Part shown: one piece after another, positions 12,466 to 20,420 of the stretch
Position numbering within the stretch: the stretch's first letter is position 1
Layout of the letters: each line of letters begins with the position of its first letter
Source of the DNA: Zygnema circumcarinatum SAG 698-1b
Lineage: Eukaryota > Plantae > Zygnematophyceae
Assembly: GCA_037447605.1 (NCBI GenBank)
Contig: CM074812.1
Span: 2,480,001 to 2,544,000 of the forward strand
Direction: 5' to 3'
Length of the DNA: 64,000 bases
Program-made: the position numbers and the translations under genes
Notes under the pieces: model-generated
What the model was told of the DNA's origin: nothing
The model's input: only the letters and a program-made list of their open reading frames with translations
Databases searched by the model: none

Positions 12466-15400
12466 ATGCGGTCGGACGGAGGAGGGGGGCTTGGGAGGGT
12501 GCTGAAGGAGAGAGAGAGGGGGAGGGAGGAGGAGGAGAGGGAGGGGGAGAGGGAGAGGGAGACGGAGAGGGAGAGAGGGGGCGAAAGAAAGGTTAAGAGG
12601 AAGGGGGGGAGAGGGGATAGGAGTGCGGATCAAGGAGGAGGGGTGGAGAGGGAGAGGGAGAGGGAGAGGGAGAAGGAAAGTGAGAGGGAGAGGGAGAGAC
12701 GGCTTCAGGACTTCACTGAGGAGGAGATACTGCAGTTGACGAGGGAGGAATGCAGACGCTATCTTAAGGAAGAAGGTGAGTTGGGGAGGGGGGGGTGGGG
12801 GGGGGAAGGGAGGGAGAGGGGAGGGAGGGGGCTGCAGAAGGAGGTGGATATGGGGAGGGAGAGGAGGGGGGGAGGAGGAGGGAGAGAGAGGGGAGGGAGG
12901 GGGCTGCAAAAGGAGGGGGGCATGGGGAGGGAGAGGAGAGGAATGAGGAGGGGGAAGAGAGTGTGGGAGAGGAAGGCGAGGTGGAGAGGAAAGGGGGGAG
13001 GGGGGGAGGAGGGTTGGAGGCGGAAAGGGTTAGAGAGAGAGAGGGGCAACGGGATAGAGGAGGGAGGGAGGGATGTTGGCAGATCGTTGGAGTAGGAGAA
13101 GAAAGAGGATGGAAGGAAGAGTATGAGGTAGAATTAATTTGAGGTACGGAAGGGGCGAGTGGAGTGAGAGAGAGAGAGGGAGGGAGAGAGGGCAGAGGAG
13201 TTGGAGTAGCAGTACGGGAAGGAGCAGAGGGGTCTGTGGGAACAAGGTGAGAGAGGCAATGGCTCGGTGAAGACATTTATTTGTTTTGGAGGGAGAGGGG
13301 GAGGATGGGAGAGGGAGGAAAGAAGTGGAGACTAGGTTGGGGGGAGGAGAGGGGAGCAGCTCTCGAGGAAGGAGAGAGCGGCAGGGGTAACGAGTGAAGG
13401 GGGAGAGGGAGAGGGAGAGGGAGAGAGAGATCAACTGGAGTGAGTGAAAGGGAGGGGGTTGGGACAGGGAGAGGGAGAGCGAGTGGGAGAGTAAGAGGGC
13501 GGGGAAGAGGGTGAGAGTGATCAATTGGAGTGAGAAGTAGGCGAGGGAGCGGGAGAGGGATAATGAGAGGGAATAGAGAGACAATTGGAAAGATGAGAGA
13601 TAGGGCATGAGGGAGAGAAGAGGAGAGCGGGAGGAAGGGAAGGGAAGGAGGATGAGAGAGATTTCATTTCTTTCGTAAATTTTAAAGGGGGGCCGAATTG
13701 GAGAGGCTGATTTGTAACTCACTTCAGAATGAACTTTAGGTTATAGGGATATTATGCTTGTGATCATTTTCAATGTTCATGAATAATATTTTCAGTTTGT
13801 GCCCACACGCTCACAATGTACAGGGGAAGAGTGCCAATTCATGTGTGGGGGACAGAGGGAGAGAGGGTGAGGGAGGGGGACGAGAGAGAGGCAAATGCGA
13901 AATCGGTAGCTGGTAGGCATTTCAATTTAAAGAGAATAAAAAATAAAGTACAGAAAGAGAGGTTTGGCGTATTATATTCTCTCTCAAGTGTTGACTTGTC
14001 CTTCTTTTTTCTCTCTCTCAACGATCTTTCTTCCCGCCACACTCCCTCCCCACTCCCTCTCACTCTCCCTCTCCCCCTGTCTTCCCCCTTCATCCGACCA
14101 CCTTTCCTCTCCTAACCCGCCTCTCTCCCTAAACCCCCTCCCACCCCCCCTCTCTCTCGTCCCCCTCCCTCCCCCTCCCCCTTACTTCCCCACTCCCTCC
14201 TCTTTCTCTCTCCCCCCTTTCTTCTCCCTCCCACCTTCCGTCCCCCCCCTTTCCCTCTACCTTCCCCTCCCCTTCCATCCCCCCCTCTCTCTCCCTCCCC
14301 CCTCCCTCCCCCTCTTACTCTCGCCCACCCTCCCTCCCCCTCCCCCTTCCGTCCCCCCCGCTCCCTTGCCCTCCCCTTCCCTCCCCCTTGTCACTCCCTC
14401 CTCCCTCCCTCGCCCCCCCACTCCCTCCTCCTTCCCGTCTTCCCCTCTCTCCCTCCCACTCACCCCCCTCTCTCCCTCCTCCCTCCCTCCCCCCCGTCTC
14501 TCCCTCCTCCCCCCTCCCCCCCCGCTCTCTCTCTCCCTCCCTCCCTCCCTCCCCCCCTCTNNNNNNNNNNAGGAGGAGGGAGAGAGAGGGGAGGGAGGGG
14601 GCTGCAAAAGGAGGGGGGCATGGGGAGGGAGAGGAGAGGAATGAGGAGGGGGAAGAGAGTGTGGGAGAGGAAGGCGAGGTGGAGAGGAAAGGGGGGAGGG
14701 GGGGAGGAGGGTTGGAGGCGGAAAGGGTTAGAGAGAGAGAGGGGCAACGGGATAGAGGAGGGAGGGAGGGATGTTGGCAGATCGTTGGAGTAGGAGAAGA
14801 AAGAGGATGGAAGGAAGAGTATGAGGTAGAATTAATTTGAGGTACGGAAGGGGCGAGTGGAGTGAGAGAGAGAGAGGGAGGGAGAGAGGGCAGAGGAGTT
14901 GGAGTAGCAGTACGGGAAGGAGCAGAGGGGTCTGTGGGAACAAGGTGAGAGAGGCAATGGCTCGGTGAAGACATTTATTTGTTTTGGAGGGAGAGGGGGA
15001 GGATGGGAGAGGGAGGAAAGAAGTGGAGACTAGGTTGGGGGGAGGAGAGGGGAGCAGCTCTCGAGGAAGGAGAGAGCGGCAGGGGTAACGAGTGAAGGGG
15101 GAGAGGGAGAGGGAGAGGGAGAGAGAGATCAACTGGAGTGAGTGAAAGGGAGGGGGTTGGGACAGGGAGAGGGAGAGCGAGTGGGAGAGTAAGAGGGCGG
15201 GGAAGAGGGTGAGAGTGATCAATTGGAGTGAGAAGTAGGCGAGGGAGCGGGAGAGGGATAATGAGAGGGAATAGAGAGACAATTGGAAAGATGAGAGATA
15301 GGGCATGAGGGAGAGAAGAGGAGAGCGGGAGGAAGGGAAGGGAAGGAGGATGAGAGAGATTTCATTTCTTTCGTAAATTTTAAAGGGGGGCCGAATTGGA

Positions 15401-18400: not shown

Positions 18401-20420
18401 GGAATTCCCCTTCCGGATTAGGCCACGTGTCACAAGGAGGGAGATCTGATGACGTCAGCAATGACGTCAGCGAAGGAGTGGTAGGAGCCATTTGGCCCTC
18501 TTTGGAGGCAGGCAGAGGACGGAGTGGTAGTGGAGGTGGGAGAGGAGACAGTCACGAAGGAGAAAAAACCTCACAAAGGAGAGAATGGTTGAGTGGAGCA
18601 GTGAGAGGGGAGGAGAGAGAGAGAGATGGGAGTAATGCGACAGTGAGTGGGAGCATCATTGAAGAGAGACGGGAGAGAGGAGAGGGAGGAGAGAGAAGAG
18701 AGAGAGGGGAGGAAATGAGAAGTAGGAGCAGCTCTCCCTCAGTGTTGGAGTTCAGATTAGGGTTAAGAGCGGCCGCTTCGCAGAGTCCGAGTTTTGGCGT
18801 CGCACAAAGTCAAGGGAGCGGGGGGGGGACACGTGGCGGCGTGGCATTGGACGGGAGCAGGTGAGAGAGGGAGGGAGGGAAGGGGGAGATGTGGAAGGGG
18901 AAGGGAGAGGGGGAGGTGGGAGGGGGAGTGGGAGTGGGAGGGGGAAGGGGAGTGGGGGTGAGAGGGGGAGGGGGGGTGGGAGGGAGAGGGGGTGTGGGAG
19001 GGGAAGGGAGAGTGGGAGGGNNNNNNNNNNCCTCGCTCCCTCCCTCTCTCTCTGTCTCCCCCTCTCTCTGTCTCCCTCCCTCCCTCCCTCCCTCCCTCTC
19101 TCTCTCTCTCTCCCTCTCTCTCTCTCTCTCCCTCTCTCTCTCTCTCTCTCTCAGGCAAACGCGGTCATTCTTCTCGCGAGGACACTCTCTACTGGAATAC
19201 GAGAGGCCAAACCTCTCTCTCCCTCCAATTTGGGAGTGGGAGGAGAAGCTGCTTCACTCACTTTGGGAATAAGGAGTGGTGAGTAATTCCAGCCCTCTTG
19301 AAAAATATCTATTTTTTAAATCATTGTATAGCCATTTTAAGAAAGAGGAAAAGGGAAGTGTTCAGAAATAGGATGAAGTTTTCTTTCACTTAAAACAAGT
19401 AATCATTCTAAAAAATAAAAATAAACAAACAATAATAAGCTAGTTATATCTTTTGATCAACCTTTGGATTGTCGGTTCAGGTTCACCGATGCTGCGACAA
19501 GCTTCAACGTTTTTGGAGGAAAGGAAACCAAGGTCTCTCTCTCTCTCTCTCTCTCTCTCTCTCTCTCTCTCTCTCTCTCTCTCTTCTCTCTCTTCTCTCT
19601 TCTCTCTCTCTCTCTCTCTCTCTCTCTCTCTCTCTCTCTCTCTCTCTCTCTCTCTCTCTTCTCTCTCTCTTCTCTTCTCTTCTCTCTCTCTTCTTCTCTC
19701 TCTTCTCTTCTCTCTCTCTTCTCTTCTCTCTCTCTCTTCTTCTCTTCTTCTTCTTTCTCTCTCTCTCTCTTCTTCTCTCTCTCTCTCTTTCTCTCTTTCT
19801 CTCTTCTCTCTCTCTCTCTCTCTCTCTCTCTCTCTCTTCTCTCTCTTCTCTCTCTCTCTCTCTCTCTCTCTCTCCCTCTCTCTCTCTCTCTTCTCTCTCT
19901 CTCTCTCTCTCTTCTCTCTCTCTCTCTCCCTCTCTCTCTCTCTCTTCTCTCTCTCTCTCTCTCTCTCTTCTCTCTCTCTCTCTCTCTCTCTCTCTCTCTT
20001 CTCTCTCTTCTCTCTCTCTCTCTCCCTCTCTCTCTCTCCCTCTCTCTCCACTCTCAACCTTAACTCCTTTGTAACCATTTTAAGAAAATTTTATAGTCTT
20101 TATGTATTAATTCTGAATATAGGAGAGACCTACTGAGCGCTGATTGGCTGCTTCCCAGGTCAAAGTCAAAGCCGCCAGGTGGCGGCCCGCTATTGAATGA
20201 TATTTCAACGGATTTCGTGCATGGAGCGCAATTGCTTCCGTTGCCGCCCACTGGAAACGAGAGCCTCTCTTCTCAGTCGAGGAATGGAGGGGCAGAGGGA
20301 GAGGGAGAGGAAAGAGGGAGAGGTGGGAGAGGAGGGAGAGGTGGAGGGAGAGAGAGAGGCCGGCACCATGTCCCCAAGAGGAGGAAGAACCCACAGGATA
20401 AAGATAGAACTTTAGATTAA
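12466..20420 (+). CDS. PPD: PEAPOD-like TIFY-family protein (PPD domain, EAR-containing middle region, degenerate ZIM, Jas-like motif)
   Basis: Exon 12466-12775 is spliced in phase 1 to 16317, giving TEEEILQLTREECRRYLKEE|GMRRPSWNKALATQQLLALKAL. A long open exon ends at 18860. Exons 19155-19278, 19481-19532 and 20123-20420 (TAA) form a phase-consistent chain. Junctions from about 16400 to the central exon and from 18860 to 19155 are unresolved. Confidence 0.75.
12700..16384 (+). CDS. PPD domain split over two exons (12700-12775 and 16317-16384)
   Basis: AAG|GTGAGT donor and CCCCAG acceptor. 31/42 residues are identical to the Arabidopsis PPD2 domain as recalled from memory. Confidence 0.92.
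12873..16258. repeat. 1.69-kb direct duplication (12873-14560 and 14571-16258) in PPD-like intron 1; probable assembly artefact
   Basis: Identical ORF translations at offset 1698; both copies end exactly at 10-N gaps. Confidence 0.85.

Follow-up and report, generated by a model that had tools for sequence, protein, structure and literature searches.

The stretch of DNA analyzed in this work (the window, 64 kb read on the forward strand of contig CM074812.1, positions 2,480,001 to 2,544,000) carries a PPD-domain gene of the TIFY family; judged by its sequence, the presence of this gene and its standing as a real member of a known family are confirmed. PEAPOD restrains organ growth in plants, and we consider that the window gene is probably an orthologue of the PEAPOD (PPD, TIFY4) co-repressor genes, which follows the seven-exon plan of land plants and whose TIFY exon is lost in an assembly gap; to this reading we give a probability of about 0.7. 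The predicted protein would have, from its N-terminus on, a PPD domain (interrupted in the gene by an intron of phase 1), a long linker, a ZIM/tify region (interrupted by one of phase 0), the Jas-like segment of a mini-exon and a tail.

The PPD domain is split by an intron characteristic of the family

The PPD domain is encoded by two exons (12466-12775 and 16317-16585) that are joined at a GT-AG junction in phase 1. The 3' end of exon 1 (12700-12775) encodes ...LQDFTEEEILQLTREECRRYLKEE and is followed, after 12775, by the donor AAG/gtgagt (the slash marks the splice site), whereas exon 2 reads (G)MRRPSWNKALATQQLLALKALLPF from 16317 and is preceded by a long pyrimidine tract and cag. A split Gly codon (G/GC) joins both exons in frame and gives ...TEEEILQLTREECRRYLKEEGMRRPSWNKALATQQLLALKAL..., which is exactly the translation that had been written down in the earlier, sequence-only reading of this region for two exons spliced into a PPD domain.

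That reading had also proposed a protein search with the domain. Using the spliced 58-amino-acid PPD domain as the query, phmmer matched 116 proteins among 1.84 billion representatives; for 105 of these E was ≤ 1e-10 and the identity 60-71%, and the best E value was 7.7e-17. Pfam, run on 115 of the matches, detected tify in 87/115 and Jas in 58/115. The named matches are the TIFY4A and TIFY4B proteins of Selaginella, Amborella, Nymphaea and Cryptomeria, and the unnamed ones include proteins of Diphasiastrum, Psilotum and Welwitschia. An alignment of 20 domains has 18 invariant columns, and the window keeps all of them (18/18). A word-based protein search with the same 58 residues, which covered proteins of 32-101 amino acids, gave no candidate sharing words with the query, and a search of the same kind with the half-domain of exon 2, too short a query, was blank.

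In several angiosperm proteins of the databases an intron has been retained, and it interrupts them at exactly KG/MRRPSWNK; therefore, the intron within the PPD domain of the window can be regarded as a feature of the family. The mis-predicted seed-plant models P0104, P0107, P0108, P0110-P0113 and P0115 read through the intron in the PPD domain, and in this way mark the conserved site.

The AlphaFold (AF2) model of the domain (12691-12775 plus 16317-16405) has a predicted local distance difference test (pLDDT) score of 83.8 and shows a helix, an extended loop and a helix. Among the top structural neighbors of this model many are SAP domains (Hcc-1, SLX4, PIAS1, Ku70, Tho1, MKL1), LEM domains and Rho N-terminal domains, with Z values of only 4-6. 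Foldseek with the model of the PPD domain gave nothing significant, nor did a sequence search of the PDB with the PPD profile, and a full-text literature search found no paper naming both PEAPOD and the SAP domain.

The downstream exons follow the exon plan of TIFY4 genes

Position matrices were built from the PPD-family matches and scored over the 100,530 six-frame positions of the window. The segment ANAVILLA (19155) ranked first of 100,530 against the matrix of 48 PPD-family ZIM helices, and FLEERKPR (19510) ranked first of 100,530 for the Jas core. Both are on one strand, 355 nt from each other and in the PPD order; hence, the claim that ZIM-helix-like and Jas-like segments follow the PPD exons in PPD order was upheld, each segment being the best match in the whole window. 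A metagenome scan with exon 5 gave 0 matches.

The exon plan of the family was obtained by mapping the Selaginella TIFY4B and Amborella TIFY4A proteins onto their own genes. Both reference genes have seven exons with end phases 1, 0, 2, 0, 1, 2; in both, exon 1 ends in ...K-x-K-G, exon 4 carries the TIFY motif up to ...DK (97 nt in Selaginella and 88 nt in Amborella), exon 5 begins with [AV]QAI..., and exon 6 is a 58-nt Jas mini-exon. The six assembled exons of the window all fit this plan and only exon 4 is unassembled, their end phases (1, 0, 2, gap, 1, 2) being those of Selaginella TIFY4B and Amborella TIFY4A. The window agrees with the references, to the residue, on where the intron falls in the PPD domain, where exon 5 begins (at the A-x-A-I/V helix) and where the Jas mini-exon starts and stops. 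The intron before exon 5 has the position and phase seen in Selaginella (DK/AQAIMLLA) and in Amborella (DK/VQAIIYLA). The Jas exon of the window has 52 nt versus 58 nt in Selaginella and Amborella, that is, it is two codons shorter, while its boundaries and phases agree.

In the sequence-only reading a different architecture had been ascribed to this gene. This idea is not sustained by the six assembled exons, which follow the seven-exon, same-phase plan of Selaginella and Amborella; and because these exons keep the plan and a gap sits at the place of the TIFY exon, the apparent difference is most likely an assembly artefact, so that the architecture of the gene is standard and not new.

Relatives in Chara and in land plants

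Compared with the vascular PEAPOD/TIFY4 proteins (Selaginella TIFY4B, XP_002989474.1, and Amborella TIFY4A), the PPD domain of the window is 60-71% identical and alike in all invariant residues, and the genes share the seven-exon plan, the phases, and the order and splice positions of the ZIM helix and the Jas-type mini-exon. In contrast, the vascular proteins have 310-410 amino acids whereas the window protein is modelled with ~657, with low-complexity linkers and EAR-like motifs in the linker; moreover, its Jas core is two residues shorter and the assembly lacks the TIFY-motif exon.

Two proteins of the stonewort alga Chara braunii carry the PPD domain, with 59-70% identity to that of the window. 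This low identity, together with the gene density of the window as against the 422-kb model of a Chara PPD gene, led us to reject the idea that the window is from Chara braunii itself. GBG65039.1 (CBR_g49108, annotated as "Tify domain-containing protein") has PPD and tify, is 59% identical to the window over the domain, shares with it REEC, QQLL and an LLP-type domain end, and has LSLSMR in its linker. The annotated gene of this protein extends over 422 kb, with a reverse-transcriptase fusion at its end; its 3' end and any Jas motif are probably mis-annotated. GBG77822.1 (CBR_g25753) is the best-scoring match of the phmmer search, and has PPD together with LSLSMR near its C-terminus. It is encoded by an uninterrupted open reading frame (ORF) of 2145 nt (BFEA01000278.1) that includes ENTH and one and a half copies of the PPD domain and no tify; the absence of the conserved intron of the family suggests that it is a chimera derived from a retrocopy. 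In a quick domain tree the window joins the two Chara proteins next to Selaginella, with a support of 89 in the Shimodaira-Hasegawa-like approximate likelihood ratio test (SH-aLRT); this grouping is weak, the tree being based on few columns (52) and the branch of the window being long.

It was stated in 2022 that PPD had been thought to arise with vascular plants, and putative PPDs were listed in Sphagnum and Marchantia, and none in Physcomitrella or Anthoceros (PMC8836299). The assertion of the sequence-only reading that PPD proteins are described mainly from vascular plants is in consequence outdated; on the other hand, its proposal that the PPD domain predates vascular plants is supported by the grouping of the window domain with the two Chara proteins, one of which has PPD and tify. 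The putative bryophyte PPDs (PMC8836299), compared with the window by their description only, are likewise from non-vascular plants, show a wider spacing between the domains, and belong to land plants. The Arabidopsis ppd deletion mutant was used in the same paper for a complementation test with Selaginella. No paper that combines PEAPOD, or TIFY and PPD, with charophytes, streptophyte algae, Klebsormidium or Chara braunii came up in full-text literature searches. The occurrence of PPD in algae seems to be undescribed in the searchable literature, though the two unnamed PPD proteins of Chara are public.

The TIFY-motif exon and the alternative explanations

Between the phase-2 end of exon 3 and the phase-0 start of exon 5, an exon with a length of 1 mod 3 is required; the lengths of exon 4 in the reference genes (88 and 97 nt) are both 1 mod 3. 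When exon 3 is joined directly to exon 5, the result is a frameshift and a stop after 39 codons. In the interval where exon 4 is expected (18861-19154) the assembled letters are GA-rich and then CT-rich, intron-like, and surround the gap at 19021-19030. Since exons 5-7 are still in frame and carry conserved motifs, we judge it most likely that the TIFY-motif exon exists and was swallowed by this assembly gap.

Several results weigh against a complete PEAPOD orthologue in the window. No TIFY-like motif was found in any frame of the assembled letters of the 64-kb window; Pfam detected neither tify nor Jas on the assembled downstream pieces, where the Jas query stopped at ...FLEER; and the Jas-like motif lacks two residues and has no PY after the core. 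Regarding an expressed product, none of the library proteins covered by phmmer was ~100% identical to the joined domain. Furthermore, the donor of exon 2 and the acceptor of exon 3 are predictions in low-complexity DNA with no homology support, and the contigs are joined by 10-N gaps, their order being taken as assembled. The missing TIFY motif, the stop after the direct join, the shortened Jas-like motif and the lack of an expressed product in that search would also agree with a true loss of the TIFY-motif exon, which would leave either a decaying pseudogene or a shortened PPD protein that has EAR-like motifs and lacks a functional ZIM or Jas; GBG77822.1 of Chara braunii represents an existing PPD-domain protein without tify. 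Nonetheless, we find a true loss unlikely, given that exons 5-7 run in frame to the stop with the phases of the family and canonical splice sites, which is unexpected if they had long been out of frame, that exons 5 and 6 retain the two best family motif matches of the window, and that the gap is exactly at the position expected for the exon.

The fact that the region is assembled in contigs of 1-1.7 kb, one of them most likely a redundant copy (see below), raises another explanation, namely that the PPD exons and the ZIM/Jas exons are not neighbors but were brought together by mis-scaffolding, or that they belong to separate transcription units, as the PPD-only protein of Chara could suggest. 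We rate this as more improbable still than a true loss, given that the whole model, from the first exon to the seventh, agrees with the PPD plan in order, strand and every intron phase, an outcome that random joins would hardly produce. Finally, the surroundings are extremely GA/CT-rich and in such DNA long open frames come free, so a chance resemblance with no gene at all might be invoked; the domain E values down to 7.7e-17, the location of the conserved segments in non-repetitive sequence, and two rank-1 motif matches in the right order effectively refute it. A PEAPOD orthologue whose TIFY exon fell in the gap is therefore the explanation that we prefer.

Gene model and assembly of the region

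The coordinates of the model are given in Table 1. The putative start in exon 1 is the first ATG in the open frame. The donor of exon 2 (GCC/gtaaaa) is predicted as the last GT before a stop at 16595-16597, and agrees with the phase of the family; the predicted intron 2 that follows may conceal another exon. The frame of exon 3 is the sole long open frame across the non-repetitive sequence of 18300-18860, its donor is CAG/gtgaga, and its end phase (2) agrees with exon 3 of the Selaginella and Amborella genes. Exon 7 is in frame with exon 6 and its start phase is that of the last exon of the same two genes; exons 5-7 thus chain in frame to the stop. Each junction of the model follows the GT-AG rule and has a pyrimidine tract, and the modelled protein has ~657 amino acids. 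In an exact database look-up, the one ORF of the window that was submitted was not on record.

Table 1. Features of the PPD-domain gene model, with positions in the window
Feature	Positions	Strand	Phase	Content
Exon 1	12466..12775	+	ends phase 1	ATG, charged low-complexity stretch, first half of PPD (...LQDFTEEEILQLTREECRRYLKEE + G)
Intron 1	12776..16316	+		gaps 14561-14570 and 16259-16268
Exon 2	16317..16585	+	1 to 0	second half of PPD (GMRRPSWNKALATQQLLALKALLPF...) and linker; acceptor cccag/GC
Intron 2 (predicted)	16586..18003	+		gap 17280-17289 at a switch from CT-rich to GA-rich
Exon 3 (5' boundary predicted)	18004..18860	+	0 to 2	Pro/Ser-rich linker, then ~560 nt of non-repetitive coding sequence
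EAR-like motif LSLSLKLD (LxLxL type)	18349..18372	+		exon 3 linker
Second EAR-like motif LEFRLGL	18745..18765	+		motif-level resemblance only
Interval of expected exon 4 (TIFY motif)	18861..19154	+	should be 2 to 0	unassembled
Exon 5	19155..19278	+	0 to 1	second half of ZIM/tify, begins ANAVILLA
Exon 6	19481..19532	+	1 to 2	52-nt Jas-like mini-exon (G)SPMLRQASTFLEERKP(R)
Exon 7	20159..20420	+	starts phase 2	C-terminal tail with basic KRRKNPQDK; stop TAA 20418-20420

The PPDs of non-seed plants and of Chara (P0025, P0038, P0042, P0045, P0060) have a DFLGL-type N-terminal motif ~100 residues before the PPD domain. The modelled exon 1 is without such a motif; therefore, the true start could lie in an unrecognized upstream exon. 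A DFLGL-like match at 42065 was dismissed as chance.

The four gaps of the region are all in inferred introns and none lies within a modelled exon. All 1688 nt of 12873-14560 recur without a mismatch (1688/1688) at 14571-16258. This second copy fills one whole contig, bounded on each side by a 10-N gap, and is most likely a redundant contig that was kept in the scaffold. In consequence, the true intron 1 probably has ~1.85 kb plus the length of the gap: the separation of 3.5 kb between the two PPD exons given in the sequence-only reading is correct as a distance in the assembly, but it is inflated by the exact 1688-nt duplicate. The contigs of the region, of 1-1.7 kb, are cut at switches between GA-rich and CT-rich sequence. 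The segment 19525-19746 is a CT microsatellite, and short runs of telomere-type CCCTAAA repeats occur within the predicted intron 2 (16586-16900).

The linker and a proposed mode of action

The two EAR-like motifs of Table 1 lie in the linker encoded by exon 3, for which no homologue was found in the protein search, where low-complexity words swamped the candidates. The sequence LSLSMR is present in both PPD-domain proteins of Chara, and in P0045 it is located between PPD and tify; in Diphasiastrum, DLTLSL occupies the interval between these two domains. These short motifs hint that the window protein might recruit TOPLESS directly.

By analogy with PPD of Arabidopsis, a partner such as a KIX8/9-type adaptor would dock on the PPD domain, and NINJA-type adaptors or other TIFY proteins on the ZIM domain; through TOPLESS, which this complex would recruit, the target genes would be repressed. 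The two EAR-like motifs of the linker might let the protein recruit TOPLESS directly as well. A broader scenario, which we put forward as a rather doubtful one, is that PPD-TIFY proteins arose in streptophyte algae, that ancestral EAR motifs in the linker (LSLS[LM][KR], in the window and in both Chara proteins) recruited TOPLESS directly, that the dependence on KIX8/9 was a later refinement of land plants, and that the PPD domain is a SAP-like module.

The published origin of PEAPOD is the base of the vascular plants or, tentatively, the bryophytes (PMC8836299). If the host of the window is an alga, its gene and the two Chara proteins put the PPD domain outside land plants; and given that the window gene has the full exon plan of land plants, a PPD gene was probably assembled before the colonization of land, before leaves and stomata. 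This raises the question of what role a growth repressor known from leaf meristemoids would have in an alga, and whether the partners KIX, NINJA, TOPLESS and SAP were already there. There is also a lesson for annotation, as ORF tracks do not reveal this gene, and a gap probably hides its hallmark exon.

Upstream of the gene, ~270 nt before the modelled ATG, the sequence CCAAT-N9-CCACGTGG is present at 12182-12203, an endoplasmic reticulum stress response element (ERSE)-type composite with a G-box.

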